Virus record (IMG/VR): IMGVR_UViG_3300031957_002643
Coordinates: 186,001-250,000 of that record
Length of the DNA stretch: 64,000 bases
Reading direction: 5' to 3' (one strand)
The stretch's first letter is position 1, and each line of letters begins with the position of its first letter. A model generated the notes under the pieces. The model was given only the letters and a program-made list of their open reading frames with translations, had not been told where the DNA came from and ran no database searches. The translations under genes and the position numbers were made by a program. Positions 16,691 to 46,640 of the stretch are shown here, piece by piece.

Positions 16691-16719
16691 TTGACTATGT
16701 AGCTCGTTGGCCTTATATG
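16691..16719 (+). promoter_or_regulatory. Sigma70-like promoter, probably giving a leaderless transcript
   Basis: TTGACT, 16-17 nt spacer, TTATAT/TATATG; ATG 16726 lies 6-7 nt downstream. Confidence 0.5.
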
Positions 16720-16725
16720 GAAGGC

Positions 16726-17097
16726 ATGAGCTACATTCTATTTCTTGATGATGTCAGAGCCGTACCAGATTGGATCAAAAATGATCCTCTGGGCTATAAG
16801 GTATGCCGATCTGCCTATGATTTCGTGCATTGTTTGAAGGACCACGGGTGTCCGCAGCATATCGCATTCGATCATGATCTTGGTCTCGAAAGTCTTGGGA
16901 CTGGTTATGATATGGCAAAGGAATTTGGAAATGAAATCCTGAGTGGAGAATTTCTTCTCCCGGCGAAGTTTTCATATTCCGTGCATAGTGCAAATCCTGT
17001 AGGTGCAGAAAATATCCGCACCTACATGCAAAACCTAATTGCTGAATGTACTAAACGTGGTCTTATTCAGGGAACCGAGGACCAGCGTCCTTCTTAG
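16726..17097 (+). CDS. Cyclic-phosphate processing receiver-domain (cREC-type) protein
   Basis: LFLDDVR, FDHDLG, TGYD and HSANPVG motifs. Confidence 0.8.
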   Translation: MSYILFLDDVRAVPDWIKNDPLGYKVCRSAYDFVHCLKDHGCPQHIAFDHDLGLESLGTGYDMAKEFGNEILSGEFLLPAKFSYSVHSANPVGAENIRTYMQNLIAECTKRGLIQGTEDQRPS

Positions 17098-18520
17098 GTG
17101 CTGGACGAGAGCGGACAGCCTTATCTCTCTTGTCTGCACCGTTACGGTCTACTGATTTTTCTGCATTGGAACCCGGTGCAGCTTTTGGGCTGTACACGGT
17201 CGCACCCTGATCACGCTTTTTGGATGGAGCCTTCATCTTATCAACTTTTGGCTTCTTTGGCTCGTGACGCTTGGTATCCTTGTATCCAAAGCCCGCATCC
17301 TTAAAGCCTTCTGGCATGTCATCAAACGACAATGCCTTGGAAAGAAGACTATCAGCGTTTTCAGCTACGATCTTTTTCGAACCAATGTATGCGTGGTTCA
17401 AACGGGCACGTGGTCCTAGTTCTGATGCAATCTCGTCCATTGCATTATGCATTGCAACGTCTTCGTTAATTGCACGAGTAACGACATCAATGATTTCGAC
17501 ACCATGTGGTGTTTTAACATTCATGGTGATTTCGAATGGTTCCATGTGTGCTTCGTAGATTTTCTTGAAATCTGAGTAAGCCTGCTTATACGCAGGTGCA
17601 ACACACTCTTTAATCCATTCCTTCTTTGAGCGATTGTGGAATGGGATATACTGACCTTCGAGTAGTTCCATGAGACGCTTGTAGGATTCTGCGATCTTGT
17701 CTTTGTGGATTTCGTCAACATCGAGGATTTTCGAGTGGATTGCTTCTAGAAGGGATGTGACGAATTTCTTGTCGCTGTATGATTCTCGTAGACCGACCTT
17801 AACATCAATCTGAATGTCTTGTCCAACATTGGCATAGTTTTCAGCCATTCTGGAAAGCATTGAAACGGATGCTGCCTCAAATACATGAGTTCTGGAACCG
17901 ACACGAACTGTCGTAGTTCCATTGATGACGCCTTCTTTGACGGGCTTCATTGAAGCCTTTACGGCCTTCATCTGGTGTGACTGACTACACTTAATGGTAT
18001 CACCTGTTGGAACAATACCATATTCAACATTTGGTTTCGATACATTGAATGTGATTTTCTTAACGGAATCTTGTGTCAGACCTTTAAGAACAGAGCCAAT
18101 CAGTTTGTTTGTGTTGGAGTCAGATGAAGCAGACCACTTAACTGGTTCCGCTTTTGAACGCTGTACCTTGTTTGCATCAAGAAATGCGCTCTTTGAATTC
18201 TTTACAGAAACCTTTAGATCAGGAGCCTTAACCTGACCGCCTTTTTTCTGCGAATTGGATGCAGGAATGCGCTTGCTAGAAGGCGCTGCTTCTGGACCAG
18301 AATTAGCAGATGGATTTCTATTCTTCATTTTGCCGGGAAGTGATGGCTTAGTTCTTTGGCGCTTCGACATTTTGTCATATGATGGGGTTGATAGTGAACC
18401 CGATGCTGATCCCTTGATTTTCACCGGAGCAGCTTGCTCAGATTCACGTGGGTATTTCGCTTGTGGCATATCTTCCATCAAAGCTTTTGAAATTTGATTA
18501 AGGCTTAACTTCTTAGTCAT
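17063..18520 (-). CDS. Hypothetical Lys/Ser/Pro-rich protein, probably late or head-associated
   Basis: Long ORF with disordered basic termini; SD GAGG and TATAAATA (18550-18557, minus strand) upstream. Confidence 0.65.
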   Translation of the reverse strand: MTKKLSLNQISKALMEDMPQAKYPRESEQAAPVKIKGSASGSLSTPSYDKMSKRQRTKPSLPGKMKNRNPSANSGPEAAPSSKRIPASNSQKKGGQVKAPDLKVSVKNSKSAFLDANKVQRSKAEPVKWSASSDSNTNKLIGSVLKGLTQDSVKKITFNVSKPNVEYGIVPTGDTIKCSQSHQMKAVKASMKPVKEGVINGTTTVRVGSRTHVFEAASVSMLSRMAENYANVGQDIQIDVKVGLRESYSDKKFVTSLLEAIHSKILDVDEIHKDKIAESYKRLMELLEGQYIPFHNRSKKEWIKECVAPAYKQAYSDFKKIYEAHMEPFEITMNVKTPHGVEIIDVVTRAINEDVAMHNAMDEIASELGPRARLNHAYIGSKKIVAENADSLLSKALSFDDMPEGFKDAGFGYKDTKRHEPKKPKVDKMKAPSKKRDQGATVYSPKAAPGSNAEKSVDRNGADKRDKAVRSRPAPKKDAGPRFPE

Positions 18521-18570
18521 GAAAATTCCTCGACATAACAATCCTATAGTATTTATATGAAAGGGACAAA

Positions 18571-19110
18571 GTGATGAGTAAAAAGATAATTCATTTGTCA
18601 GATCGTCATATAACTACGAATGGTGAAGTTGTTTTCACCTATGACGGGCTATTAAAACTCGCCAGAGATGGTAGAAACTTCCATGATTATTTAGTCGAAA
18701 AAGACAAGTATACTGATCTTTACAACAAGTACGGCTCAACACCTCTTTCATATTACGAAGAAGGAGAAAATGAAACATTTCCAAGTGTTGACTTATATCA
18801 ATGGAACACCCCCGAACCGTATTCTTCCATTGATCTAGAAGAATACTGTGCCGAACAGTTGGTTAATCACGATCTGACTAATGATCAATATCTGGAACGC
18901 CTGAGTATCGAATTGCAAGAATTCGAGGCACGCGGCATGGTCGAACTAACCCGACACCTGATTTACTTGAAGGACCATTTTGTTTCAAATGGTGTTGTTT
19001 GGGGGGTCGGCAGAGGATCAAGCTGTGCCAGCTTGGTATTGTATCTATTAGGAATCAATAAAATTGATCCTATTCTGTATGATATTCCGATGAATGAGTT
19101 TTTGAGATGA
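18571..19110 (+). CDS. DNA polymerase III alpha (DnaE)-like fragment
   Basis: Y.ERL..EL and GVGRGSSCASLVLYLLGI.KIDPI.Y.....EFL match the DnaE GRGS region; the ORF ends before the PDID catalytic motif. Confidence 0.8.
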   Translation: MMSKKIIHLSDRHITTNGEVVFTYDGLLKLARDGRNFHDYLVEKDKYTDLYNKYGSTPLSYYEEGENETFPSVDLYQWNTPEPYSSIDLEEYCAEQLVNHDLTNDQYLERLSIELQEFEARGMVELTRHLIYLKDHFVSNGVVWGVGRGSSCASLVLYLLGINKIDPILYDIPMNEFLR

Positions 19111-19769
19111 ATAGCTACGAAGTTGATGACAATGAAGTATTCCATGAAGTATTGAAATACTTGGAAGAAGAAATTTATGATGATAGAACAGGATTGTTTT
19201 ATAAAAGATCAGTAGAATTCTTCGAAACCTTGCTAAAACAATATCTTCAGATTAAATCTGGCAGTTGTAATGATGATCCTTTGTACGAACATATCAGAAA
19301 TCTATTAGAGAATGATCCGCCTTACACTATAAAAAATAGCATCGTCAAAAATGAGATAGCCACAGATTTGTATTGTGGAATGGAAGCGCTAAAGTCTGAT
19401 TTGAAGGAAGAGGCCGCAGAAGTGCCTATCTCATTCGTTGATGAAATAGAAATGGATATGTTTGATGCTGGGAGATTGAGAAGTCCTTCCAATTTCGTCC
19501 TCGAACCACAACAGACCGTGTTTTTAGATATGAAAATGAAGTTCGTGATCCCATCTGGATACGGATTATCGGTATTTTCGATTGACGATGATGTGATTAT
19601 TCACAATCCCCTATTCATGCCAGATCATGATGGTAAAATTCATCTCAAGTTCCTGATGTTTAATACTAAGCCCTCTACAATGATAAGTATATCTAAAGGT
19701 AGTCAAGTGGCTACCGCACGTCTTATCAAGCTTACAGAAATGACGAAGGTTGATATGGACTTAACTTAA
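19107..19769 (+). CDS. Protein with degenerate dUTPase-like C-terminal domain
   Basis: DAG.LRSP..FVLEP.QT......IPSGY and ISKGSQVA follow the trimeric dUTPase pattern, but RSG, G.ID.DY and motif V are absent. Confidence 0.55.
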   Translation: MNSYEVDDNEVFHEVLKYLEEEIYDDRTGLFYKRSVEFFETLLKQYLQIKSGSCNDDPLYEHIRNLLENDPPYTIKNSIVKNEIATDLYCGMEALKSDLKEEAAEVPISFVDEIEMDMFDAGRLRSPSNFVLEPQQTVFLDMKMKFVIPSGYGLSVFSIDDDVIIHNPLFMPDHDGKIHLKFLMFNTKPSTMISISKGSQVATARLIKLTEMTKVDMDLT

Positions 19770-19787
19770 TCATAAGAGGACATAATA

Positions 19788-20021
19788 ATGGCAAGGAGAG
19801 ATTGGTCATCAATCAAATCAGCCCATGCTTACATTTTACAATATTTGAGCGAGCATGAAACTGCGACCGAAAATTTATTAAATACACGTCACGATCCAGC
19901 GATTGTGAGTCAGTGTTTACAGCTTCTTGTGGAACGCGGAGTACTATTGTTGAAATTTGATGATAGGAAAACCGGAGTGGCGAGAAGAGTTTATACATTA
20001 GCTGAAGGAGTAAAAGTATAA
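19788..20021 (+). CDS. Hypothetical protein, possible winged-helix
   Basis: SD GAGGA; helix-LVERGVL-strand-RRVYTL pattern. Confidence 0.6.
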   Translation: MARRDWSSIKSAHAYILQYLSEHETATENLLNTRHDPAIVSQCLQLLVERGVLLLKFDDRKTGVARRVYTLAEGVKV

Positions 20022-20275
20022 TGGCTATTAGAAGTGCAAAAGGCAAAATGGTAGATTTCGATGATCTAAAAGCACGCGCAAACGCTCGTGCTCAACAAGA
20101 TGAGCAGGCAAATGAAAGTGCAGGACTATCGCGCCCAAGTGACACCTTCATTCCACCACAAGGAAATGCTACAGCGAGACCGGCAGTCAAAAAGCCCGTT
20201 CAAAAAGCCAAAGCAAAGAAATCCGAGAGCGATGTTGCTTCAGAAATCTTGGACGAACTGAAAACAAAAGATTGA
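20021..20275 (+). CDS. Hypothetical protein
   Basis: MAIRSAKGKMVDFDDL N-terminus; TAATG coupling. Confidence 0.7.
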   Translation: MAIRSAKGKMVDFDDLKARANARAQQDEQANESAGLSRPSDTFIPPQGNATARPAVKKPVQKAKAKKSESDVASEILDELKTKD

Positions 20276-20299
20276 CAGACTAACTATCTGTGATATCAT
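20272..20299 (+). promoter_or_regulatory. Sigma70-like promoter, leaderless
   Basis: TTGACA-16-TATCAT; ATG 20306 is 6 nt downstream with no SD. Confidence 0.6.
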
Positions 20300-20305
20300 A
20301 ACAAT

Positions 20306-21133
20306 ATGATTTATTATGCCATCGGTGACATACATGGAATGTATGATCATCTTCAATCAATGTTGTCTAGAATCAAACTTCATCACGGGCGTGAGTATCC
20401 GAATGAAGAATATCAAATTGTGCTTCTCGGAGACTATGTTGACCGGGGGGCACAATCAAAACAAGTCATTGATTATCTGATTGAACATCAGGAGAAAGAC
20501 AATCTCATCGTTCTGCCCGGAAATCATGAGCAAATGATGCTTGGTATGATTGAAGAATATGATGATGGTAGTTTTGAAAAATATATGATCTGGTGGGCTA
20601 GAAATGGTGGCTTTCGGACCCTTCAGTCATATTTCCCAGAAGATCACCCATCAAGAACGCCCGCCAACTGGATGAGCAGACAAAATTGTCGTGATTGGTC
20701 CGATGAGTGGAAGAACAAGTTCCCAGAACATCACAAATTCTTGGAAACCGTCTTGTTTGGTGGGTATTCGCCAAACAAGACGGTGTATTTTCTAGATTAT
20801 GAAGATCGCATCATGTTTGTACATGCTGGTGTTATTCCGGCCAAAGAACTCAGCCAGCACAATGGGCAAGAATTGCTTTGGTCTCGGGACGCCAGCTTCT
20901 TGACAGATTCAGTAAAATGGATCGAAGAAACCGTAGACATGGTTGTCCATGGTCATACGCCGATGGTGGAGACCGCACGATTTGGCGCTCATCGTTCTGG
21001 TCTCGATGCTGGTGTGTTCTCGACTGGTGAATTGTGCTGTGGTGTGTTTGTAGACGGGGAGCGGGTGGACACTCTGTATGTAGAAGGCCCACCCGCGAAT
21101 TATCATCCGCCGTCAGAGTTTACGAGATACTAA
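20306..21133 (+). CDS. Calcineurin-like metallophosphoesterase (lambda-PP/PrpA Ser/Thr phosphatase type)
   Basis: GDIHG, GDYVDRG, GNHE, FVHAG and HGHTP motifs. Confidence 0.9.
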   Translation: MIYYAIGDIHGMYDHLQSMLSRIKLHHGREYPNEEYQIVLLGDYVDRGAQSKQVIDYLIEHQEKDNLIVLPGNHEQMMLGMIEEYDDGSFEKYMIWWARNGGFRTLQSYFPEDHPSRTPANWMSRQNCRDWSDEWKNKFPEHHKFLETVLFGGYSPNKTVYFLDYEDRIMFVHAGVIPAKELSQHNGQELLWSRDASFLTDSVKWIEETVDMVVHGHTPMVETARFGAHRSGLDAGVFSTGELCCGVFVDGERVDTLYVEGPPANYHPPSEFTRY

Positions 21134-21527
21134 TCTTCTTGGCTGAAGATTTAGGCTCTACTCGCTCAAGACTAATGGTAAGAATACCATTTTCGAAAGT
21201 CGCGGCCGCGACAACGATATCATTCATGAGTCGGAATACACTCTTGAACGATCTGTTTGCAATGCCTTGATGAATATATTCATCGGAAGACACGCCATCA
21301 TCTGTTGACGCCTTTTCGATGACCAACAGTCCCTTATCTTCGGTAATGTTGATATCATCCTGATCATATCCAGCTAGAGCCATTTCAATGGAATAATTGG
21401 TATCGTTGTGTCTGATCAGGTTGTAAGGTGGGAAATTTGGGCTTTTACCGTAAGGGAAACCCGTGATGTTGTTGTCGAAACCAATAAAATGCTTCAACAG
21501 TTCATCAGTAGTAAGTGATCTTGTCAT
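21120..21527 (-). CDS. Small heat shock protein (Hsp20/IbpA family)
   Basis: FIGFD, NFPPYNL, IEMALAG, YIHQGIANRSF and A.FENGILTI; start at 21527 behind SD AAGGAG. Confidence 0.9.
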   Translation of the reverse strand: MTRSLTTDELLKHFIGFDNNITGFPYGKSPNFPPYNLIRHNDTNYSIEMALAGYDQDDINITEDKGLLVIEKASTDDGVSSDEYIHQGIANRSFKSVFRLMNDIVVAAATFENGILTISLERVEPKSSAKKISIS

Positions 21528-21589
21528 GTTTATAATTCTCCTTTGAGCAATTATCACCAGAACGCCTTCAGTAAGCGCGTCCCATGTCA
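21528..21589 (-). promoter_or_regulatory. ROSE-like RNA thermometer in hsp20 5' UTR
   Basis: Minus strand UUGCUC-AAAG-GAGAA hairpin (21536-21550) pairs the SD with a bulged G; TATAAATA at 21590-21597. Confidence 0.65.
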
Positions 21590-21627
21590 TATTTATAGGG
21601 TGAGACGCACGAATACTAGAGGAACCT

Positions 21628-21978
21628 ATGAATAATTTTCCAGTAGAACCAGTAAGCAATTGGATCGCTGTCGATCTAATAGATACAGGCGCTAAAGTAC
21701 TACAAAGTGGGATCATCATCCAAGATGATGACATGAAAAAGCATGGCATCAGACCACGCTGGGCGAAAGTTATTGCCGTTGGGCCAGATGTCCACAAAGA
21801 GGGAGACATCAATCCGGGCAATTTTCTTTTGTTGGAGCATTTGGGATGGACCCGTGCTATTGATGTTGATATGGACGGTGAAGACACCAAGGTATATTGG
21901 ACCATTCCCGAAAAAGTGGTTCTGATCTCGGATGAGACGGATGAAAAGAAACTTCCTCTAGTAACGGCAGAGCAATGA
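21628..21978 (+). CDS. GroES-like co-chaperonin
   Basis: VEPVSNWIAV, SGIII, AKVIAVGP and INPGNFLL match the Cpn10 pattern. Confidence 0.75.
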   Translation: MNNFPVEPVSNWIAVDLIDTGAKVLQSGIIIQDDDMKKHGIRPRWAKVIAVGPDVHKEGDINPGNFLLLEHLGWTRAIDVDMDGEDTKVYWTIPEKVVLISDETDEKKLPLVTAEQ

Positions 21979-22892
21979 TTCCTGATCTTTGGGTAGACAA
22001 ATACAAACCTATGACGATTGACGATTATGTCTTTCAGAATGAAGAAGATCGTCAACGTATCAAGGAATGGATCAAACAGGGTTGGACCGATAACCTGATC
22101 CTTGCTGGTCCTCCCGGCACAGGAAAAACCTCTCTCATTCGTGTAGTGCTGAATGAGATTGGTGTTGATCATGATGACTTCTTAAAAATCAACGCCGCTC
22201 GTGCCGGTACTGTTGATACCATCAAAGGCACAATCACAGACTTCATTCAAACAGGCGGATGGTCTTCCCTGTATCGTTATATCGTATTGAATGAGGCTGA
22301 CGGTATGACGGCAGTTGCACAGCCGATGTTGAATGACGACATGGAAGAGTATTCGGATACTATTCGATGGATGCTCACGACAAACAAGCTGCACAAAATC
22401 ATTAATCCCGTTCAAGATAGATGCACAGTAATCAAAATCGATGCTCCTGATCAGGAACAATTGATCAATCGTATGCTCTTCATTTTGGAGCAAGAGAAGA
22501 TACCAGTGGATGATGATTCACTGGCTATTGTGGCGGACATCATCGATAACAATTATCCGTCTGTCCGAAAATGCGTTCGTGCCCTACAAAATTCTGTGGT
22601 CAATGGTCGTTTGCAATTGATCAAGCAGGAGGTTGTTGACGAAACATGGAAGCATGAGATTGTTGATGCGTTCAAATCCAATGATCTTCAATACGCCCGA
22701 AACATGATCCGTCAAAACATGACTCGTGATGATATCGAAGGCTATATCGTGTGGCTCGCAAATCATCTAGAGTTGTTTGATAATCAACTGATGGCTCTCG
22801 GTAAACTGAGAGAAGCACTAATTGCTAATCCTACAGTAGCAGACCCGGAAATCAATCTTTCTGCAACTTTGGGATTAATTACACAAGGATAA
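21975..22892 (+). CDS. Clamp loader AAA+ subunit (T4 gp44/RFC small-like)
   Basis: LWVDKYKP, GPPGTGKT, NEAD and DRC (SRC-like) motifs. Confidence 0.9.
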   Translation: MIPDLWVDKYKPMTIDDYVFQNEEDRQRIKEWIKQGWTDNLILAGPPGTGKTSLIRVVLNEIGVDHDDFLKINAARAGTVDTIKGTITDFIQTGGWSSLYRYIVLNEADGMTAVAQPMLNDDMEEYSDTIRWMLTTNKLHKIINPVQDRCTVIKIDAPDQEQLINRMLFILEQEKIPVDDDSLAIVADIIDNNYPSVRKCVRALQNSVVNGRLQLIKQEVVDETWKHEIVDAFKSNDLQYARNMIRQNMTRDDIEGYIVWLANHLELFDNQLMALGKLREALIANPTVADPEINLSATLGLITQG

Positions 22893-22897
22893 CAACC

Positions 22898-23320
22898 ATG
22901 CATAAAAATACCACAACATATGTGTCTTACCTTTATCCCGGTTCATTCTTTCCAGAAACCCAAACCGAACAGGTCGAACGAAGAGAACCAGAAGAGCTAA
23001 TCAAGAACATGAAAAATGGATGCTACGCATTCTTTTATCATGATCGTACTACGGTTGTTGATGACGAGGGGAACGAGTTCGTAGGAGAAACAGAGAACCG
23101 CTCAAAGAGATACGTGTTTGTGGATAGCATCTATAACACTGATGACATTAAGAAAATGAATACATCTGGTCGGCACGACATTCTATTAGGAAATATGAAG
23201 TCTAATGGTTGGGATAAGGTAGTCAAAACCAATCAAGGAAATTTCCAACCGTTTGATAGTACTGAAGAATACATAATGATGGAGAAGGTATCGTTTATTA
23301 GACCGGGATTGTATGGGTAA
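22898..23320 (+). CDS. Hypothetical protein
   Basis: 140-aa ORF with SD AAGGA. Confidence 0.7.
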   Translation: MHKNTTTYVSYLYPGSFFPETQTEQVERREPEELIKNMKNGCYAFFYHDRTTVVDDEGNEFVGETENRSKRYVFVDSIYNTDDIKKMNTSGRHDILLGNMKSNGWDKVVKTNQGNFQPFDSTEEYIMMEKVSFIRPGLYG

Positions 23321-23367
23321 AGAGAATACTAATACCTACTAAGTATATGGATACGGAGAATATTGAT

Positions 23368-24453: not shown

Positions 24454-24459
24454 GAGATT

Positions 24460-24491
24460 ATGGGCCGGGTGTTTCTCATCCGGCCCATTTT
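24460..24491 (+). terminator. Rho-independent terminator
   Basis: ATGGGCCGGGTG-TTTCT-CATCCGGCCCAT followed by TTT, directly after phoH. Confidence 0.8.
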
Positions 24492-24493
24492 AC

Positions 24494-24501
24494 TATAAAT
24501 A
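24494..24501 (+). promoter_or_regulatory. T4-late-type promoter TATAAATA
   Basis: Exact T4 late consensus right after a terminator, 5 nt before ATG 24507. Confidence 0.7.
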
Positions 24502-24506
24502 TCTTC

Positions 24507-25022
24507 ATGGAAGATTTTGATATACTAATCGAAGCACTTACTAATGGTGCTCCTGAAGATGAAGTAACCGATATTCTCAATGAGAATAAATTCGATGAAG
24601 AGCATCGGGAGACCCAAAGTTATTACCTGCTTCTATTTGAACAATACATAGATGAGTGTTCTGCATACTCCTTTAAAGGATGGGATGACCTCAAAGTCTA
24701 TGGTGAACCAAAAATTGAAAAATTCTGGTTTGAAGTTAAGCTGTTAGCGCCTGACAATATTGATTACGAGAGCGGTATTAAGCGCATCCTTGGTCAGTAT
24801 AAACAAAACAAAGCAGTAATGAAGACCATTAACAATGGTTCTAAAATAATAAAAATAAGAATTCTTCGGTCCATTCTTGATGAACTCGAAGACAGAAATA
24901 GAAAACTCGCTAGAAAAGAAGCCGAAGATCAAGGTTATGCACCGCAGGAGGAGCCACCACAGGACAATCAACAGGGTGGTGATGAATTTGGTGGTGATGA
25001 ATTTGGTCAGGAAAGTTTCTAA
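24507..25022 (+). CDS. Hypothetical acidic protein
   Basis: 171-aa ORF. Confidence 0.7.
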   Translation: MEDFDILIEALTNGAPEDEVTDILNENKFDEEHRETQSYYLLLFEQYIDECSAYSFKGWDDLKVYGEPKIEKFWFEVKLLAPDNIDYESGIKRILGQYKQNKAVMKTINNGSKIIKIRILRSILDELEDRNRKLARKEAEDQGYAPQEEPPQDNQQGGDEFGGDEFGQESF

Positions 25023-29639: not shown

Positions 29640-29668
29640 TTGACAAGAACTTGCTTTTCGTGTAAGAT
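29640..29668 (+). promoter_or_regulatory. Sigma70-like promoter, leaderless
   Basis: TTGACA-17-TAAGAT; ATG 29675 is 6 nt downstream with no SD. Confidence 0.65.
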
Positions 29669-29674
29669 ATAATC

Positions 29675-30670
29675 ATGAAAAGTATTTTTGGAACCGTCGC
29701 AGGGTCATTCCTGTTTGGAACATCTGTAGAGCGTAGCGATATCGATATTCGCGGCGTTTATATTCCGTCACTGAATGACATTGTGATGCAGCGTGTGAAA
29801 GTCGATAACGCGCCCCTTCGAGAACTCGATACTGCTGCTATCTATAAGCAAGCACGCGGTATCGCCATGCGTTATGGCTTCGGAACACCTGAAGATGGTG
29901 ATGATGTCAACTCTATGCCGTTGCATCATTTCCTTTCGTTGGTTGCGTCTGGTGAAGTCACTACAACTGAACTCATGTTTGCTCCGAACCATTTCTGGAT
30001 TACGGACATGACTGATTATTTCGTGTGGCTGGAAGTCCAGAAGATTCGTTCCAAGATCGTCACGAAACAAATCAAACGTGCAGTCGGTTTCTGTAATGGC
30101 ATCTACATGCAGTTCGGAGTACGTGCTGAACGCCTATCAGCGGCCATTGAAGCACGTGATCTGATTAAGGGACTGGTAGATAGTCATTCTCATAATGCTC
30201 TTCTGGGAGCCTATGAGCGCGATTTCTTGCCACTCACCGAATTGGATCATATCGAACTGGATTCAGATGACCACAACATCAAGATGCTCCGTGTTTGTGG
30301 TCGAGGCCTTCAATACACGGCGACAGTCGGCAATGCATTGAACGTCCTTGAAGGAGCGGTTGCTTCTTATGGCAAGCGTGCGAATGCATCCTTGAACCCG
30401 GAACGCAAGGATTGGAAGTCAGTAATGCATGCGCTCCGAGTGTCAGAACAAACGATTGAACTCCTGAAGGACGGAGAAATTCGTTTCATCCGTCCTAATT
30501 CGGGATATCTTCGTGAAGTTCGTTCGGGTGAACGACCGATGGATGAAGTTACGGCAAAGATCGATGAAAACATGGCAGTCATGAACGAATTGGTCGAAAC
30601 TTCTGATTTGCCGGAAACCGCAGACATGAATGCAATCGAAGAACTGGTCAAGGAACTGTATTTGAGATAG
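29675..30670 (+). CDS. Pol-beta superfamily nucleotidyltransferase (RlaP / T4 NrdC.11-like)
   Basis: GSFLFGT....SDIDIRGVY, DWKSVMHALR, ELL..GEI and S.LPE..D. Confidence 0.85.
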   Translation: MKSIFGTVAGSFLFGTSVERSDIDIRGVYIPSLNDIVMQRVKVDNAPLRELDTAAIYKQARGIAMRYGFGTPEDGDDVNSMPLHHFLSLVASGEVTTTELMFAPNHFWITDMTDYFVWLEVQKIRSKIVTKQIKRAVGFCNGIYMQFGVRAERLSAAIEARDLIKGLVDSHSHNALLGAYERDFLPLTELDHIELDSDDHNIKMLRVCGRGLQYTATVGNALNVLEGAVASYGKRANASLNPERKDWKSVMHALRVSEQTIELLKDGEIRFIRPNSGYLREVRSGERPMDEVTAKIDENMAVMNELVETSDLPETADMNAIEELVKELYLR

Positions 30671-30687
30671 GGAGAAATCCCTATCTC
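30664..30687. terminator. Hairpin between convergent genes
   Basis: GAGATAGGGA-GAAA-TCCCTATCTC, a perfect 10-bp stem with GNRA loop. Confidence 0.7.
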
Positions 30688-40279: not shown

Positions 40280-40320
40280 TTTCTCTTTACAAATGATTTC
40301 GATCCGTATATAAAAACATT

Positions 40321-40836
40321 ATGACCCGTCGTCCTCACTTCATTATGCTTGGTGGTGTCCCCGCTACTGGCAAATCAACCCATCGCGCAACGTTGATGGA
40401 GAAGTATCCTGATGCCTTCGTGTATTCCACGGATGATCGTCTGAAGGAAATTGCTGCAAGCCGTGGCGTTTCTTATGGCGATCTCCCGATGAAGGAACAC
40501 AAGCAGGCAAAGGCCCATATGAACGCCAAATTGAAAGAGGCGATCAATAAGGGTATGGATATTATTTGGGATCAGACTAACTTTTTGGCTCATGTTCGCC
40601 GCAATCGACATGATATGATTCCGAATACCTATACGAAGGAATTGTTTTTCTTCCATTGTCGTGACGATGAAGAAATTAAGCGTCGTATTTCCGAACGCAC
40701 GGAACAGCAGGTGCCATGGCATGTCGTTGCAAACATGATCGAACGTCTGGAACTTCCGGGCGGCGATGATGAGGTGTTCGAAAAATTCGAACTTATCGAT
40801 ACTACGCCTTCATCGACGGATGGTAATAGCGAATAA
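40321..40836 (+). CDS. P-loop kinase (AAA_33 / polynucleotide kinase-like)
   Basis: GVPATGKST, STDD and WDQTN...R.R; preceded by TTTACA-17-TATAAA and 6 nt (leaderless). Confidence 0.85.
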   Translation: MTRRPHFIMLGGVPATGKSTHRATLMEKYPDAFVYSTDDRLKEIAASRGVSYGDLPMKEHKQAKAHMNAKLKEAINKGMDIIWDQTNFLAHVRRNRHDMIPNTYTKELFFFHCRDDEEIKRRISERTEQQVPWHVVANMIERLELPGGDDEVFEKFELIDTTPSSTDGNSE

Positions 40837-41389
40837 CTGGATCGGTGGCATCATGTCGCCAGTGAAACCATGCATAATTGTGGCGTGGCGAACTGTCACC
40901 ATCTCGTTTTTCGAACCACCTTGGTCGTTTGGTTAGAACGATTTTCCCGGCATAAAAATCACAATCCCCAAACAGGGCACGCCTAGTGTGTGCGCAGTCC
41001 CATTCGTTTCGCATGAGAACAGATACGGATTTAATATCGCCTGTAGCCACCATGTCAACAGCACGTCTAACGAATGGTTCTGAAATTTCTCGCTCATAGG
41101 GCGGATTAGTTACGATGTGATCCCCGCGTGGTTCAGCATCCATGAAATCTTCTACCGAACCGTATCCCCAATCATAAATGTCTGAACTGGTGACATTTGG
41201 ATTGTATTGTTTGATCCCTTCAGCCATCAAACCGGAACCACAAGCCGGTTCCCAAATTTGACCGCTGAAATGATCAGGAGTATCCTTGAAGGTTTCAAAC
41301 AAGGCTTCAGTGCACCACTCTTCAATTGTGAAGTATGCATCGTTTGCGATCCGGTCATAACCAGATGTTGACATGGCTTTATCTTTCAT
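40802..41389 (-). CDS. Amino-DNA methyltransferase (N6-A/N4-C)
   Basis: D.YFT, WEPACGSG (motif I) and TNPPY (motif IV); start uncertain (41374/41389/41416). Confidence 0.85.
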   Translation of the reverse strand: MKDKAMSTSGYDRIANDAYFTIEEWCTEALFETFKDTPDHFSGQIWEPACGSGLMAEGIKQYNPNVTSSDIYDWGYGSVEDFMDAEPRGDHIVTNPPYEREISEPFVRRAVDMVATGDIKSVSVLMRNEWDCAHTRRALFGDCDFYAGKIVLTKRPRWFEKRDGDSSPRHNYAWFHWRHDATDPVIRYYHPSMKA

Positions 41390-41422
41390 GTTAATAGTTA
41401 TTGGCCGGATCGGCATTTACCA

Positions 41423-41653
41423 ATGGGATGGACTATGGATATTTTTTCTTTCATTGCTGCATTGATCATCACGATCCTTGCTTTTGTGGGACGTTTTGTC
41501 TTTTATAAAAAAGGCGAGTATCATCATATTTCAATTGCTTGTGCTGTAGTTGGTTCCATTTCTATTATGGTATTTGGAATTTCGACAATTGTACTGATGG
41601 TTAACTTTCTGTTGACCCATGACTTTATTACTGTGACTGAAATTAACAGTTGA
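41423..41653 (+). CDS. Small membrane protein (2 TM)
   Basis: Two hydrophobic segments. Confidence 0.55.
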   Translation: MGWTMDIFSFIAALIITILAFVGRFVFYKKGEYHHISIACAVVGSISIMVFGISTIVLMVNFLLTHDFITVTEINS

Positions 41654-41696
41654 CAAATGCTTCTCTCCCGTGTATAAAGGACATAACACGGGAGAG
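41650..41696 (+). promoter_or_regulatory. Sigma70-like promoter with embedded RBS-occluding inverted repeat
   Basis: TTGACA-17-TATAAA; CTCTCCCGTGT (41663-41673) pairs with ACACGGGAGAG (41686-41696). Confidence 0.65.
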
Positions 41697-41702
41697 GACA
41701 TT

Positions 41703-42287
41703 ATGGTGCCGCATATTTCTACGCTGCAAAATCGTGATACTGCTCAACTCGCAGCAGAAGAACTTGCCCGTCAGGAAGTTACGGTCGATTGGCTCTATGA
41801 CTCCAAGGATGCATGGAGCGCTATCCAACGGGTTTTCTGCTGGACGAGCGATGATGCAGAATCCATGGGTTTAGACCCGTGGCGTTTCAATCCTGATCTG
41901 GACGCGGCTCAAGAGCGTGGTTGGCGATTCTTCGTACAAGTTTCCGATCTGCCCGAACGCGATCAGATTATTTTCCGCATCTGTAAAATGATTCGTCCTT
42001 ACATGTGGCGTTCTGGTTACGTTGAATCTGGTCTCGATTCCAAGGATCATATTTCGATTTGGGTTCCGAAACGCTTTATGGAGCACGCTCCCGACGATGA
42101 GGGCAGCAGCGATGAACTTGATGGGTTCGTTATCAAAATGATAGAAGGCATTACGTTCAATGGTCCAATCGTGGAAACGTGGGTGGGCATGTCAACACTC
42201 GGTTGGGGCGATCTTCCTCTGGAAGACCTGAAGCTGGTCGAACAATGGGTCACCGAAGAAATCGACAAACTCAAGAAGGGAAATTGA
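41703..42287 (+). CDS. Hypothetical protein
   Basis: SD GGAGAGGA before ATG 41703. Confidence 0.7.
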   Translation: MVPHISTLQNRDTAQLAAEELARQEVTVDWLYDSKDAWSAIQRVFCWTSDDAESMGLDPWRFNPDLDAAQERGWRFFVQVSDLPERDQIIFRICKMIRPYMWRSGYVESGLDSKDHISIWVPKRFMEHAPDDEGSSDELDGFVIKMIEGITFNGPIVETWVGMSTLGWGDLPLEDLKLVEQWVTEEIDKLKKGN

Positions 42288-42288
42288 A

Positions 42289-42615
42289 ATGACCAAGAAA
42301 GAAGCAATGGAACGTTGGGCGGGCCTCAAACCCAATCAAAAGGTTTTGCCGCATATGACGCCGCTGCCTGCGGCTTCTGAAGGCTCGACGTATGGCGCCT
42401 GTGGTATCCGCATCACCGGTAACCCGGAATTCGTGGACGCGGTTCTGTCCCGACTGAAGGACCTTCTGGAAGCCGAAGGCGAAACCACTCGTCTGCATCT
42501 GGCTCGTGCTCCGATCAAGGACACCAGTGAGAAGCAATTCCACAATCGGGATGGTGGTGCGGAAAGCTGCTACATTCAGGTCCGCGAACGAGCACGACCG
42601 AAACCGCCCCGTTAA
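42289..42615 (+). CDS. Hypothetical protein
   Basis: 108-aa ORF directly after the previous stop. Confidence 0.7.
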   Translation: MTKKEAMERWAGLKPNQKVLPHMTPLPAASEGSTYGACGIRITGNPEFVDAVLSRLKDLLEAEGETTRLHLARAPIKDTSEKQFHNRDGGAESCYIQVRERARPKPPR

Positions 42616-43082
42616 CGATTAGAGTTTATATTCACTAGAATTTCACGGGGTCGAGGTAGATGGTCTACCTCGATTTCCGTTTCTGAAGATGCCGAAGACG
42701 AAACTTCGATCTTACCGACATTCAGAATTCTTTGCCAAAATGTTTGCTGACACCGAAACTTGGTAATGTCCTGCAAAAAGATTTGAGTGACTTCCTTATC
42801 AAAGATACCGTTCGTCACTCGGATATATGTATTAGTTATCAGAACATCAGTACTTTTGATGTTGTATAACCATCCGGCAAAGCTTAACAGAACCATCACA
42901 AACACACCAATTGCAATAGCTAGACTTTGGATGACAAACCAAGGTAGTATCAGCGCTGCAACCAAAAGCGCGACGAGCAATGCGAAATGGAACGGCTTTG
43001 ATCTGATCATAGCCGGATTCGCGTGATACAGAATCTTTTTGTCTGCCCGCTTCTCTATATTTTCGTTTCCATTTTCGAACAT
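42612..43082 (-). CDS. Membrane protein with bacterial PH (bPH_2) domain
   Basis: 2 TM, then ITN..I....GIF....I.L.DI.....QTFWQRILNVG.I. Confidence 0.8.
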   Translation of the reverse strand: MFENGNENIEKRADKKILYHANPAMIRSKPFHFALLVALLVAALILPWFVIQSLAIAIGVFVMVLLSFAGWLYNIKSTDVLITNTYIRVTNGIFDKEVTQIFLQDITKFRCQQTFWQRILNVGKIEVSSSASSETEIEVDHLPRPREILVNINSNR

Positions 43083-43142
43083 GAAATTGCTCCTTATGAT
43101 AAGTATATTATGTATTAACCTACATTACAAGAGAAAATTGTC

Positions 43143-43376
43143 ATGGACGCTACCAAGCAGAAAATCGAAAACATCCTTTTAGAAGCAGAAGAATTGACGG
43201 AATACAATAAATCCGACAAAGTTGCAAACTGGAAGGCGAAATTCATGCGTGATAACAAACACATCGGCAGTAAGACATATCACATGACCAAACGAAGTGT
43301 AGCCGTATCCAAAGCAGAGAAACTTGCGAACCGTGTCGGTGCCACTGTTTATGATTTTGCTCAAACGTTTATCTGA
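43143..43376 (+). CDS. Hypothetical protein
   Basis: 77-aa ORF, divergent from the PH-domain gene. Confidence 0.6.
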   Translation: MDATKQKIENILLEAEELTEYNKSDKVANWKAKFMRDNKHIGSKTYHMTKRSVAVSKAEKLANRVGATVYDFAQTFI

Positions 43377-43431
43377 CTTGACATAAGCTCACATATCTGT
43401 TTATGTGTGGTCTCGTATAATAGAGAGCCGC

Positions 43432-43770
43432 ATGTCAGATGATCCCCAGACATATGATTTCGTCCAACCACCACGTACTGGTGGTGAGGCTAGAGCACGA
43501 TTATGTCCCTTTAAGGTTTCAACCTATTGTATGGTGAATGGCTGTATGGCGTGGATGACTCTTTCTGATACTGAAGAAATTGCAGACAAACCAATATCCC
43601 ATATCGAGGTTACGGACAATGATGGAAACGGTCAGCAAATTCAAAAGAAAATGAATATTACTAACACTTGGAAAGAAATCGAAATTGACGGTACGATCAA
43701 ATACGAAAGAAGATTGAGATGGCAAGAGCTTGTTGGTATTTGTATGCGTTTGGAGAAAAATAATGGATAG
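43432..43770 (+). CDS. 4-Cys protein, paralogue 1
   Basis: EARARLCPF..C....CMAW...G.C. Confidence 0.7.
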   Translation: MSDDPQTYDFVQPPRTGGEARARLCPFKVSTYCMVNGCMAWMTLSDTEEIADKPISHIEVTDNDGNGQQIQKKMNITNTWKEIEIDGTIKYERRLRWQELVGICMRLEKNNG

Positions 43771-44053
43771 TGATTCTGTTATCGGTTCCCCGTTACGCTC
43801 CAGAAAGGAAATGGCCAATAAGTTATGTCCATTCAAGCTTGCGTCGGGTACGGGGTTCACTGCTTGCGAAACCCTACAATGTGCTGCATGGCAAACGGTG
43901 GTGAGCGAATTAGAAGTCAAAGCTGAAGACCTCCCATTATATCAAGATAGTGCAGCACAGGTGAAGCCACTGTCAGGTGGAATGTTTCATGTTACGTTGA
44001 AGCGTAATGAGTGTTTGGGTGTTTGTCATATGCTTCATGGGGTCAAGGTATGA
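43763..44053 (+). CDS. 4-Cys protein, paralogue 2
   Basis: EMANKLCPF...C....CAAW...GVC; SD GGAG. Confidence 0.7.
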   Translation: MDSDSVIGSPLRSRKEMANKLCPFKLASGTGFTACETLQCAAWQTVVSELEVKAEDLPLYQDSAAQVKPLSGGMFHVTLKRNECLGVCHMLHGVKV

Positions 44054-44463
44054 AGCTTACACCAGACAATATAAAGCAACCGATCCTTAACGAAAACGAA
44101 GCCAAGAAGAAAAATTGTTTTAAAGCAAACGGACACAATTGTTGTGCTAACAATTGTATGGCTTGGATTCGTTTGAATGATAAAATCATTATTGATGAAA
44201 TGCCCGAAGAGCCAACTGAAGGCATAACACATCGAACCATTCGGCAACGGCGTTATAACGGGTATTATGGCGATAATAGTATCATAGACACCTATCGTCA
44301 AAATATTGAATGGGAAGAACACGTTGATGGTGATGGGAACACTTATTTCTCTCGCCCACCATCAGCCGACATTAAGGATTTCAATAAAATATATGGTTTT
44401 TGTCTTGCATTAGAAGAAATAATGTGTAATATCCAAGCTTCCATGTCAGAACCCAAGGAGTAA
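44050..44463 (+). CDS. 4-Cys protein, paralogue 3
   Basis: EAKKKNCF...C....CMAW...GFC; ATGA overlap. Confidence 0.7.
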   Translation: MKLTPDNIKQPILNENEAKKKNCFKANGHNCCANNCMAWIRLNDKIIIDEMPEEPTEGITHRTIRQRRYNGYYGDNSIIDTYRQNIEWEEHVDGDGNTYFSRPPSADIKDFNKIYGFCLALEEIMCNIQASMSEPKE

Positions 44464-44466
44464 TTC

Positions 44467-45102
44467 ATGAAACTCTGGCAAGTCAAAAGAGGCACCGCCC
44501 TTCATGGGTTACTACAAGGTGCTGTCAATCTGAATGCAACCGCATTCGAACCAACATACTTCGATGATGGGAAATACAGCCCCCTTCTTCGTCGTTTCCG
44601 TGGCAATATGATGAACTTCTGCGAGGTATCACGACATGTGATCCTCTGGACGCCTCTGTATCTTCTGGTACATGTGCTTATGATTGCCATGCCGCTGACC
44701 GCAATCTTCGTTTATCCGGTCATGCGTTTCGGTGTAACACCCATCATGTGGTATTTCATTGTTGCTGCTGGTGTTGCTGCTGTCATTATTGCGTTGATGT
44801 TCTTAGTCAGAACAACTGAGAAAATCACGGATGCACGGCGAGCAGCAAAAGAAGAAAAACGAGCAGCGGAGCAACATGCTGAGCCGGTCGTCAAGAAAGA
44901 GAACAAGTTCTTCAAATGGCTTGTCAATTTCATGGTCAACGGTGTCTTTAAGTTCATCGGCAGAACCCTTCTGTTGTTCGGACTGATCCCCGCGATCTTC
45001 AAATTCATCGCCATGCTCTATACCATGTTCAAGGACAATTTCTGTCCGATGGTTGAGATCGTTGACGATGAAACCGAAACCACAGAAGAAGGAGCAGAGT
45101 AA
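44467..45102 (+). CDS. Membrane protein
   Basis: Several hydrophobic segments, N-terminal NFC and C-terminal FCP; SD AAGGAG. Confidence 0.7.
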   Translation: MKLWQVKRGTALHGLLQGAVNLNATAFEPTYFDDGKYSPLLRRFRGNMMNFCEVSRHVILWTPLYLLVHVLMIAMPLTAIFVYPVMRFGVTPIMWYFIVAAGVAAVIIALMFLVRTTEKITDARRAAKEEKRAAEQHAEPVVKKENKFFKWLVNFMVNGVFKFIGRTLLLFGLIPAIFKFIAMLYTMFKDNFCPMVEIVDDETETTEEGAE

Positions 45103-45443
45103 TGAAGCTTTCTGATTTTCTCCTCAAGCGCAAGAACATCATTCCTGCCCTTGGCGTGTCCCTTCTCTTTAGCCTTGTATGGGTTTGGGTTGTTGTTTTC
45201 TTGATCCCGAATCTGTCTGGCGAATGGGAAACCGTTTCGACCGAAGAATGTCCAGTGACGGTTCAGGTTCGAGATAATGGCTCTCCGTATCTAACTGCGA
45301 CATGTGATGATGAGACGATCAATATCATTAGCTCTTCGCAAGTAGCGAGAGCGCTATATGACAATACTGATACTGCGCAATGCACGATCAGTCGTCATTC
45401 TCACAGTGGTGATACAAATTACTCTTGCAGAATTTCTTCTTGA
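45102..45443 (+). CDS. Membrane-anchored protein with 4 Cys in a probable periplasmic domain
   Basis: One TM followed by a Cys-containing domain. Confidence 0.65.
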   Translation: MKLSDFLLKRKNIIPALGVSLLFSLVWVWVVVFLIPNLSGEWETVSTEECPVTVQVRDNGSPYLTATCDDETINIISSSQVARALYDNTDTAQCTISRHSHSGDTNYSCRISS

Positions 45444-45475
45444 CAACTCAATAAAAACCGTATAACTATACGGTT
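45440..45475 (+). promoter_or_regulatory. Sigma70-like promoter with perfect palindrome over -10 region
   Basis: TTGACA at 45440; AACCGTATA-AC-TATACGGTT (45456-45475) abuts ATG 45476. Confidence 0.55.
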
Positions 45476-46267
45476 ATGAAAAGAGAACTGTCAAAAGAAC
45501 TTCCGCTCCGAGTGATCGGTGACGTGCACGGTGGCTTCGAGGAATTCGAAGCCATCGTTCGTCATGGTCTGGAACAAGGCCGCTTCATTGTGTGCCTTGG
45601 CGATCCTGAAGACCGTGGCCCGAACCCGGCCAAAGTGATCGAACTCATCATGGACCTTTATGATGAGGGCAAGGCCGACGAAGTTATGTCCAATCACAAA
45701 TGGAAGCACTATCGGTATTACGATGGTCGTCCGGTGATGCTCAATGACGAGCACAAGAAGACTCGTCGTGATATCAACTCCATGGGCCGTGAATTCGTTG
45801 AACGTTATCTTGAGTTCTGTAAACGAGTTCCGTGGTTTATCCGTCATGGTGATAACTTCTTCGCCCATGCATCATATCATCCGATTGCCTGTGAAGAAGC
45901 ACCGAGCCGGAAGTATCGCAAGATTCTTCAGGAACGCCTGATCTATGGCCAAACGAGTGGACGTATGGAAGGTGGATTACCAGTGCGACTGTTGGATTGG
46001 ATTGACCGTGTTCCTGAAAGCATGAATGTGTTTGTCGGTCACCACATCCTGTCAACCGAAGAAATCCTTCAGTTCCAAACGACTGGTGGGAAGGTCCACT
46101 TTGTTGACCTTGGTTGTCAGTCGCGTGAAGGTGGTCAACTGGCCTATGTTGACATCGATGAAGGAAAGATCACAGGTTCGTCCCATGATATCTCCTTCAA
46201 AGATGATCCTTCGGAATTTGGCGATTATCGTTTGAACGTTTCTGAGAGCAATGCGAATGGCGAGTAA
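45476..46267 (+). CDS. Metallophosphoesterase (PrpE / bacterial Pnkp phosphatase-domain-like)
   Basis: GDVHG, GD..DRGP, SNH..K..RY..GR.V, HA, IYGQT.G....G.PVR..W, VGH and DLGC...GG.L. Confidence 0.85.
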   Translation: MKRELSKELPLRVIGDVHGGFEEFEAIVRHGLEQGRFIVCLGDPEDRGPNPAKVIELIMDLYDEGKADEVMSNHKWKHYRYYDGRPVMLNDEHKKTRRDINSMGREFVERYLEFCKRVPWFIRHGDNFFAHASYHPIACEEAPSRKYRKILQERLIYGQTSGRMEGGLPVRLLDWIDRVPESMNVFVGHHILSTEEILQFQTTGGKVHFVDLGCQSREGGQLAYVDIDEGKITGSSHDISFKDDPSEFGDYRLNVSESNANGE

Positions 46268-46605
46268 AGACGGAACATCATCCGTTCTCTGAATTCGCTT
46301 GCTCCAAAAATTTCAATCATTAATCCCAACCGCGATCCTTCTGGACGCCCGGTTAGTACCAAATACACATCTCGAAAGAACGAACGGAGCCGTTCCTTTC
46401 CGTAGTGTTCCTTGCCAACCGCATAACAGATGGTCATATATTCTTCGGAAGTGTGACCATCTTCTAATTGCGGAAGAAGATCGTTCATTGCACCAATAAA
46501 AATGCGAGCACGCTCATGCAACTCGGCCACTGGTGCGTCGAGTTCAAAGGTATCGTCACTATAGTCAATTAGTGCGAAATAAGCTGCAAGTTCTCTGTAA
46601 TCCAT
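46225..46605 (-). CDS. Stand-alone class I lysyl-tRNA synthetase anticodon-binding-domain-like protein
   Basis: EEYMTICYAVGKEH....LRSFFRDVYLVLTG...GSRLG..I..FG matches the LysRS-I C-terminal pattern; no HIGH/KMSK catalytic domain. Confidence 0.75.
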   Translation of the reverse strand: MDYRELAAYFALIDYSDDTFELDAPVAELHERARIFIGAMNDLLPQLEDGHTSEEYMTICYAVGKEHYGKERLRSFFRDVYLVLTGRPEGSRLGLMIEIFGASEFRERMMFRLYSPFALLSETFKR

Positions 46606-46612
46606 AAATCGG

Positions 46613-46640
46613 ATTATACGTCATTTAGTGGGAAAGTCAA
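46613..46640 (-). promoter_or_regulatory. Sigma70-like promoter, leaderless
   Basis: TTGACT-16-TATAAT, 7 nt before ATG 46605. Confidence 0.7.

Follow-up and report, generated by a model that had tools for sequence, protein, structure and literature searches.

Promoters fused to start codons in a T4-like jumbo phage: predicted leaderless single-gene units within and beyond RNA repair

How is a phage gene expressed when its promoter ends so close to the start codon that no ribosome binding site fits between them? The question is raised by six genes scattered over a 64,000-nucleotide (nt) stretch of DNA, here called the window, which comprises bases 186,001-250,000 of a 335,552-bp IMG/VR virus record. 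They encode a stand-alone cREC protein, two metallophosphatases, an RlaP-type nucleotidyltransferase, a P-loop kinase and p126, a stand-alone domain with some likeness to a lysyl-tRNA synthetase (LysRS). A sequence-only reading of the window had taken them for an early regulon of RNA repair in which all members give leaderless messenger RNAs (mRNAs). The analysis given here points elsewhere. The six are probably single-gene units in which a sigma70-type promoter is fused to the start codon, and they would form a conserved subset of a leaderless habit running through the lineage, not a private regulon. That about 29 genes have leaderless messages is a prediction from sequence.

The six sites share one geometry, with a TTGACA-like -35 hexamer, a spacer of 16-17 nt and a -10 hexamer beginning with TA that ends 6-7 nt before the first ATG of the open reading frame (ORF). 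Ahead of the cREC gene the predicted promoter (16691-16725, + strand) starts right after the stop codon of the preceding gene (15431-16690) and consists of TTGACT (16691-16696), a 17-nt spacer and TATATG (16714-16719), with 6 nt to the ATG at 16726. That of the first phosphatase (20272-20305, +) has TTGACA (20272-20277), within which lies the TGA stop of the preceding gene, a 16-nt spacer and a TG-extended TATCAT (20294-20299) 6 nt before the ATG at 20306; it agrees with the consensus at 11 of 12 positions and has a matrix score of 13.8. The predicted RlaP promoter (29640-29674, +; score 12.5) follows directly on a dCMP deaminase stop codon, its TTGACA (29640-29645) and TAAGAT (29663-29668) being 17 nt apart and the latter 6 nt from the ATG at 29675. 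The kinase gene has a weaker candidate (40286-40320, +), TTTACA (40286-40291), 17 nt, TATAAA (40309-40314) and 6 nt to the ATG at 40321, which is a member of the phage's own 'ccgtaTATAA' subclass. Before the second, Pnkp-like phosphatase gene (predicted promoter 45440-45475, +), TTGACA (45440-45445) again holds the TGA stop of the preceding gene, and 17 nt separate it from TAACTA (45463-45468), which is within a 20-nt palindrome (45456-45475) and 7 nt from the ATG at 45476. On the other strand the predicted p126 promoter (46606-46640, -; 11 of 12 matches, score 13.2) has TTGACT (46640-46635), with the TGA stop of a small preceding ORF inside it, a 16-nt spacer, TATAAT (46618-46613) and 7 nt to the ATG at 46605. 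The sites at 20306, 29675 and 46605(-), with 10-11 of 12 consensus positions, are strong and among the best sigma70 matches of the region; 45476 is of medium grade, and 16726 and 40321 have a weak -10.

Each ATG is the first possible start after a stop codon in the same frame, 4-18 codons before it; the cREC gene has, 3 codons further up within its -10, another ATG that relatives do not share. The start codon is ATG in the six genes and throughout their orthologues, whose N-termini match from residue 1, and because catalytic motifs (GDIHG, GDVHG, a GS...DID motif and a DD pair) begin within 7-17 residues of the starts, no downstream start is viable. Duplex energies with the anti-Shine-Dalgarno (SD) sequence are between -2.1 and +0.5 kcal/mol at the six starts; about half of all genes are at -4 or below. 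Site readings and duplex energies together confirm what the sequence-only reading had seen at these genes, namely a -35, a -10 ending 6-7 nt before the ATG and no usable SD. Its comparison promoters at 41650, ~57500 and 61974 likewise proved to have ordinary SD leaders, 16-25 nt long with GGAG-like boxes. The one at 41650-41705 (+), for instance, has TTGACA, a 17-nt spacer, TATAAA and a 24-nt leader containing GGGAGAGG before the ATG at 41703. A TANNNT box about 12 nt upstream of the start serves as an in-silico signature of leaderless genes, of which lambda is cited as the first case (PMC3160421); it is present at 20306, 29675 and 46605, and its final T is missing at 16726, 40321 and 45476. 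The last -10 base is T in only 29 of the 56 TTGAC-N16-18-TA promoters beside gene starts (27 lack it). TATAAA, TATAAC and TATAAG boxes are frequent among the promoters of this phage and the 'ccgtaTATAA(C/A)' subclass is common; this absence of a final T from many of the phage's own -10 boxes softens the weak scores of 16726 and 40321.

How far does the arrangement extend? For the whole genome a crude codon-usage caller of our own was used, with longest-ORF starts, for which reason genome-wide SD fractions are rough, and promoters were scored with an E. coli-type matrix. The distances between -10 and start are bimodal: one peak, at 5-8 nt, is sharp and the other, at 15-30 nt, is broad and contains the SD. 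Some 10-12 sigma70-type genes are leaderless-configured and ~45 are SD-led, with leaders of 19-30 nt. At a promoter score of at least 9 with the -10 ending 5-8 nt upstream, 7 of 301 first-ATG starts were found; all ATGs taken together predict 0.89 and local shuffles 0.885, with no shuffle giving more than 4 (P=4e-5). Apart from the genes of the window, the sigma70-type leaderless-configured set includes genes for a peptide deformylase, a divergently transcribed 93-amino-acid (aa) protein, an HD_4 protein, a YAcAr SLOG protein and small ORFans. Candidate 59083 was downgraded, its ATG overlapping the upstream stop (ATGA coupling) and its -35 being poor; candidates 180984 (GTG) and 281458 (TTG) were dropped for their non-AUG starts. 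Over two promoter classes, ~29 of ~400 genes are leaderless-configured.

The record, assembled from seawater metagenomes, has direct terminal repeats, is rated complete and has a G+C content of 42%. Its DNA polymerase shares no more than 37% identity with those of the Sinorhizobium, Agrobacterium, Vibrio and Rak2-like jumbo phages, and a T4-like core is represented by gp32 and clamp-loader families in the phage and by gp13 in relatives. Megablast against phages gave no close cultured relative, and a deformylase scan of genome contigs found no relatives. Syntenic DNA was available from a 52.9-kb relative (G001), collinear with 13-60 kb of the window at protein identities of 40-80%, and, by way of RlaP homologues, from further lineages termed type B (L039, L044, L046), type C (L041, L045) and type D (L043). 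A metagenome scan for RlaP loci yielded only the same relative again and one distant SD-led homologue.

Leaderless geometry is kept for cREC in 4 of 4 genomes (G001, type B and type C included, with the ORF truncated in G001), for the first phosphatase in 4 of 4, and for the Pnkp-like phosphatase and p126 in 3 of 3 each (G001 and type B included). In 13 of 14 orthologue cases TTGAC and ATG are 28-30 nt apart. The hexamers are the conserved part, with pairwise identities of 82% (-35) and 57% (-10); the spacer (30%) and the discriminator (28%) are at background level. In a blind scan of the relatives' ORFs of at least 80 aa, the same orthologues come out as the top leaderless-configured starts. 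Other genes vary. For RlaP, 2 of 5 genomes (the window and G001) have the leaderless form; in types B and C the gene has the same kind of promoter with a 25-nt SD leader, and in type D it is translationally coupled to the preceding gene. The kinase gene is leaderless only in the window, having a leader of ~43 nt in G001, and it is itself an insertion/deletion difference, present in the window and G001, with no such gene in that slot in types B and C. For bPH_2, conversely, it is the type B gene that is leaderless-configured and the gene of this phage that has an SD leader, and the deformylase gene is leader-led in more distant relatives. It is thus probable that purifying selection maintains the arrangement for cREC, the first phosphatase, the Pnkp-like phosphatase and p126, and that the leaderless state of the RlaP and kinase genes is recent and lineage-specific. 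In G001 (48166-48992) the cREC ORF is cut to 21 codons though its promoter is the stronger one (TTGACA-16-TATACT-6-ATG), and the DNA that follows encodes a protein with a HELGH motif, apparently ImmA/IrrE-like.

A second class of promoter shows the same proximity to the start codon. The 7-mer ATAAATA occurs 70 times in the genome, and 15 of these copies are exactly 5 nt before an ATG start, where 0.08 would be expected per distance bin; four further copies of the (N)ATAAATA late-type box, NATAAATA, are 4-7 nt before an ATG. Box NATAAATA is the late consensus of cyanomyoviruses (PMC2984593), and the T4 late box spans -13 to -6 (PMC2988020), so that with a 5-nt gap +1 falls on the A of the ATG. 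About 17 genes are leaderless-configured in this way, mostly of no recognised function, and ~20 more late-type boxes are 17-30 nt (mode 24) before SD-led starts, including those of giant genes (2,957, 4,535 and 1,920 aa). The clearest case is a 171-aa gene with no Pfam family found (24507-25022, +), ahead of which, at 24460-24506, come a terminator hairpin (24460-24488), a TATAAATA box (24494-24501) and 5 nt. The terminator occupies the position expected for a -35, and the order terminator, box, 5 nt, ATG is present in 4 of the 4 genomes compared. Two other late-type units in the window are those of a 133-aa gene (1572-1987, +; GATAAATA, 6 nt, ATG at 1586) and a 123-aa gene (57855-58239, -; CATAAATA at 58239-58232, 5 nt, ATG at 58226), the G001 start orthologous to the latter having GATAAATA, 5 nt and ATG. 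Pfam searches with 18 late-type leaderless genes gave one match only, to GNAT, for which reason late timing or a virion role could not be shown. The conservation of four of the sigma70-type units and of that at 24507 suggests selection on at least some of them, rather than drift.

Is the arrangement a property of RNA repair? The phage encodes a kinase, a 2',3'-phosphatase-type esterase, cREC, RlaP, four RNA ligases, Thg1, HAD_SAK_2 and a CCA-adding enzyme; cRec, RlaP, YAcAr, kinases and phosphoesterases have been described as conflict and RNA-repair genes of jumbo phages (PMC7824862), and RlaP adds one or two nucleotides to damaged RNA 3' ends (bioRxiv 10.64898/2025.12.29.696909). The sequence-only reading had suggested seeking a partner RNA ligase elsewhere; the four RNA ligases are three of Rnl2 type (PF09414) and one of Rnl1 type. 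RtcB, 2H (2_5_RNA_ligase2) and KptA were not found in a search for other repair families; a RegB-like SD-cutting nuclease gave no match either, which is uninformative as the control genomes likewise gave none. There is no Pnkp-type fusion or operon: 5 kb separate the kinase gene (40321) from that of the esterase (45476), and the ligase genes are 60-180 kb away. That reading's suggestion that all RNA-repair genes are leaderless does not hold, since an SD leader or an operon-internal position is found for all four ligases, Thg1, HAD_SAK_2 and the CCA-adding enzyme. Nor is leaderless geometry peculiar to repair, as it also heads the deformylase, HD_4 and YAcAr genes, ORFans and the ~17 late-type genes. 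Leaderless starts among unrelated genes were what that reading had itself named as telling against it; in spirit they do so, with 24507 inside the very interval it considered. What survives of the proposed functional bias is a nominal over-representation. RNA-repair genes are leaderless-configured in 4 of 11 cases as compared to 25 of 386 others (Fisher P=0.005; P=1.4e-4 against the sigma70-type class alone), for a category chosen post hoc with only ~90 proteins scanned, and most leaderless-configured genes are unrelated to repair or of no known function.

Two repair loci are of note here. The HAD_SAK_2 gene (genome 181,498-182,048) has TTGACA-17-TAATAT and 15 nt to its ATG, with an implied leader of 8 nt and GGAG 2 nt before the start. 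Deformylase and the Rnl1-type ligase form a bicistron, deformylase first, behind a leaderless-type promoter, and at this locus (genome 169,394-171,587) two leaderless-configured promoters overlap back to back in a 36-nt gap, one for the 93-aa ORF (-) and the other for deformylase-Rnl1 (+); more distant relatives have a wider gap and SD leaders.

The mechanism that would account for these observations is simple. As the -10 ends 6-7 nt upstream, RNA polymerase would initiate at the A of the ATG. Leaderless mRNAs such as that of lambda cI are decoded by direct binding of 70S ribosomes and initiator tRNA, and the 5'-AUG messages without SD predicted here would be decoded in the same manner. Genome-wide there would be two promoter classes, sigma70-type with ~10-12 such genes, presumably early, and NATAAATA late-type with ~17, presumably late, each also having SD-led members with leaders of ~20-30 nt. 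On read-through transcripts from upstream co-directional genes an AUG lacking SD would be poorly translated, so that each unit would be gated by its own promoter, its expression probably being modest. All six units are the last gene ahead of a convergent gene, which makes each effectively monocistronic.

Several points weigh against this account. Sites 16726 (score 6.9) and 40321 (5.5), which lack T at -7, are within chance by the E. coli-type matrix. The first 40 nt of leaderless-configured genes are not less structured than those of all genes (mean -4.4 vs -3.7 kcal/mol, P=0.34). The RlaP, deformylase and bPH_2 orthologues are SD-led in some relatives and, since they work with SD leaders, the leaderless state may be nearly neutral. 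The sequencing runs that hold the region are two DNA metagenome runs, with no RNA runs listed, and the rationale of promoter gating and low expression is wholly inferential.

Other explanations have to be set beside it. One is that promoter-like hexamers and start codons have come together by chance in AT-rich intergenic DNA, as might be thought because a simple consensus scan, with matches of at least 9 of 12, shows no overall excess over shuffles and two of the six sites are weak. The 7 starts against 0.9 expected at a matrix score of at least 9, the conservation of geometry across genomes and the missing SD at 11 of the 11 starts with a leaderless-type promoter (Fisher P=1.3e-4) leave it with next to no probability; it is effectively refuted for the class as a whole, and possible for 40321 alone. 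A different doubt is whether the messages are leaderless at all, or whether ribosomes initiate on longer read-through transcripts by an SD-independent route, AU-rich or S1-dependent, the hexamers having some other role or being incidental. Read-through transcripts probably exist, because co-directional upstream genes end within or next to the -35, and no terminator was found before 5 of the 6 units in the window. Yet conservation falls precisely on the -35 and -10 hexamers, which are promoter-spaced and the same as those of the ~45 SD-led promoters, their constant distance from the ATG is the one that places +1 on its A, and in type B the Pnkp-like unit sits behind a strong terminator, all of which makes read-through improbable as the explanation.

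A more serious contender, and a possible one though it is not favoured here, is a habit of host or lineage without specific purpose: the host would translate leaderless mRNAs well and the fusion of promoter to ATG would be near-neutral compaction, gained and lost by small deletions. The spread of the same geometry over ~29 of ~400 genes and two unrelated promoter classes fits this, as does the way that RlaP, deformylase, bPH_2 and kinase orthologues flip both ways among relatives, and the stop codons of preceding genes embedded in the -35 at three sites point to extreme compaction. It is harder to reconcile with the four genes that keep the geometry through 40-50% protein divergence while their spacers are randomised, with the 24507 unit in four genomes, or with the fact that most genes and ~80% of sigma70-type promoters keep SD leaders. 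The regulon originally proposed, of early counter-defence RNA end-healing enzymes expressed SD-independently in spite of host ribotoxins, is unlikely. The six genes do look like SD-less, promoter-abutted units and four of them are conserved as such, the geometry is kept for cREC, the Pnkp-like phosphatase and p126, and the nominal enrichment, the prior description of cREC, RlaP, polynucleotide kinases and phosphoesterases as jumbo-phage repair components (PMC7824862), the HAD_SAK_2 leader of just 8 nt and the deformylase-Rnl1 bicistron all lean its way. Nevertheless seven RNA-repair genes are SD-led or operon-internal, most leaderless-configured genes lie outside repair with ~17 of them behind late-type boxes, and RlaP and the kinase are leaderless in only 2 of 5 genomes and only here, respectively, so the state is neither common to all repair genes nor limited to them. 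The idea of ribotoxin-proof translation is also mechanistically weak, because tRNA-cleaving toxins, whose damage these enzymes repair, would block elongation regardless of the leader, and leaderless starts give no obvious protection. It is similarly doubtful, and not to be expected on present evidence, that leaderless initiation is a deliberate strategy of the lineage whereby ~29 messages independent of the anti-SD, made from host-sigma and late-type promoters and including those of end-healing enzymes and of the conserved p126 beside the Pnkp-like phosphatase, stay translatable, or gain an advantage, once a host defence or the phage's own takeover has shut off SD-dependent initiation.

To return to the predicted promoter-ATG units, what do the six genes encode and where are they? 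The cREC gene (16726-17097, +; 123 aa) matches Pfam cREC_REC (PF20274) at 65 bits against a cut-off of 27, and its N-terminus MSYILFLDD, with the DD pair at residues 8-9, is conserved in relatives; a convergent gene (17063-18541, -) follows. The first phosphatase (20306-21133, +; 275 aa) is a PPP-family metallophosphatase, found by Pfam Metallophos and with 1g5b as best PDB match, that resembles lambda-phosphatase, PP1 and ApaH; the alignment of the protein over four genomes begins at residue 1. Next to its gene, in convergent orientation, comes an HSP20-like gene that tblastn placed at 21431-21162 (-), with 43% identity to its type C counterpart; it is in the apparent gap 21134-21627 and is masked by a long spurious ORF (21120-22172, -). 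Within the phosphatase coding region there is a 17-pair hairpin with a T-rich tail at 20747-20784 (residues ~148-160), where the protein alignment shows no insertion. The RlaP-type Pol-beta nucleotidyltransferase gene (29675-30670, +; 331 aa) was assigned by Pfam RlaP and ESM Atlas. Its Pfam match (PF10127) covers only the N-terminal part and is marginal, with 24 bits where the cut-off is 23, and 17.5 bits in a six-frame search; the protein is within RlaP clusters in the ESM Atlas (score 0.97, TM score 0.83), and homologues carry PF10127. A terminator hairpin lies at 30664-30687, then come convergent genes, and in 5 of 5 genomes the neighbour is a convergent ATP-dependent DNA ligase gene (DNA_ligase_A_M), not an RNA ligase gene, the kind of neighbour to which the RlaP family owes its name.

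The kinase gene (40321-40836, +; 171 aa) encodes a polynucleotide-kinase-like AAA_33 P-loop protein (Pfam, 60 bits) and is followed by a convergent gene (40802-41416, -). The second phosphatase gene (45476-46267, +; 263 aa) encodes a Pnkp-like metallophosphoesterase of 2',3'-phosphatase type (Pfam Metallophos; PDB 4j6o, E=4.5e-14); we take 4j6o to be the phosphatase domain of Clostridium thermocellum Pnkp. The p126 gene (46225-46605, -) has no Pfam hit. The likeness of its product, a stand-alone domain, to the anticodon-binding domain of class-I LysRS (Anticodon_2) comes from the Atlas only (score 0.96, TM score 0.65 to tRNA-synt_1f clusters), with a weak GluRS match in PDB. It is convergent with the Pnkp-like phosphatase gene in three phage lineages, their 3' ends overlapping by 43 nt in the window, and this position beside an end-healing enzyme hints at tRNA-directed repair or shielding. 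The family assignments are clear for the cREC, Metallophos and AAA_33 proteins and marginal in Pfam for RlaP, and the first phosphatase is not demonstrably an RNA-repair enzyme. All six units sit in a replication module, with a Pol III alpha fragment, clamp loader, helicase, dCMP deaminase, DNA ligase, DNA polymerase B and a 5'-3' exonuclease.

Some neighbouring features deserve mention. The 20-nt palindrome, AACCGTATAACTATACGGTT (45456-45475), covers the -10 of the 45476 promoter; on the minus strand it is overlapped by a terminator-like reading and by a promoter match of 11/12 (TTGACA 45494-45489, TATAGT 45470-45465), whose TTGACA G001 does not share, and the region 45456-45494 could be an operator or an antisense element. 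Upstream of p126, in the stretch 46606-46892 (-), a tRNA-Pro(UGG) gene (46778-46854, -) has its own TTGACT-17-TATAAA promoter, which ends 9 nt before the mature 5' end, and between the two is an ORF of ~38 aa (ATG ~46758, -) whose TGA stop is within the p126 -35. Among SD-led promoters a near-identical promoter-leader cassette recurs before unrelated genes, at genome 123,860, 126,764, 148,267, 149,890 and ~267,960 and at 41650 of the window. It has TTGACA, a spacer ending in ccgtaTATAA(C/A) and a leader ending in caacGGGAGAGAACATT before the ATG; in two of the copies, those at 41650 and 268 kb, the leader's SD region and the promoter spacer are complementary.

How do such units compare with known systems? 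The lambda cI message from PRM is leaderless and comes from a sigma70 promoter. As there, the -10 ends ~6-7 nt before an ATG that, as a 5'-terminal AUG, would be the sole signal in the absence of an SD, judging here by the DNA alone. Whereas cI is the repressor gene of a temperate phage, the present case concerns a lytic T4-like jumbo phage with ~10-12 enzyme genes so arranged and conservation in diverged relatives. Start-site maps of phiKZ show no leaderless transcript (PMC8244752), and AR9 leaders are 26-491 nt long (PMC5312081). The late-type boxes are like the late promoters of the T4 family, TATAAATA in T4 and KVP40 and NATAAATA in cyanomyoviruses (PMC2988020; PMC2984593), in being 8 bp with a variable first base and no -35, and in also occurring ~24 nt before SD-led giant genes, presumably for virion proteins. 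Unlike in those promoters, the box is exactly 5 nt before the ATG in 15 genes, from which the late transcripts would be leaderless; a literature search found no report of leaderless late transcripts from T4-type (TATAAATA) promoters or of leaderless jumbo-phage messages. With T4 Pnk-Rnl1, bacterial Pnkp-Hen1 and the repair sets of other jumbo phages (PMC7824862) the phage shares end-healing and sealing genes, known here from the genes alone; in contrast to Pnk-Rnl1 and Pnkp-Hen1, its components are separate and scattered over more than 200 kb, neither fused nor operonic. There is also a resemblance to phage morons. Morons are single accessory genes with their own promoter inserted between core genes, and the present units are likewise single accessory genes, each with its own promoter, amid core replication genes, the kinase gene being present or absent and RlaP having its own terminator. 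They differ in that most are conserved in position, lack a recognisable terminator and have the promoter fused to the ATG.

For the claim with which this locus was first singled out the value of the finding is mainly corrective, the link to RNA repair being an enrichment within a broader habit and not a private regulon. There is a practical side, as gene callers that depend on a ribosome binding site will misplace such starts. Leaderless mRNAs have been regarded as rare curiosities in phages of SD-using hosts. If the present interpretation is right, ~7% of the genes of this phage, and nearly one third of its recognisable promoters, run as leaderless units, which would come from two polymerase specificities and be kept by selection for particular accessory genes. 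Such a phage would then offer a natural system for what leaderless translation is good for, be it insulation from read-through, dosage, timing or robustness to attack on initiation.

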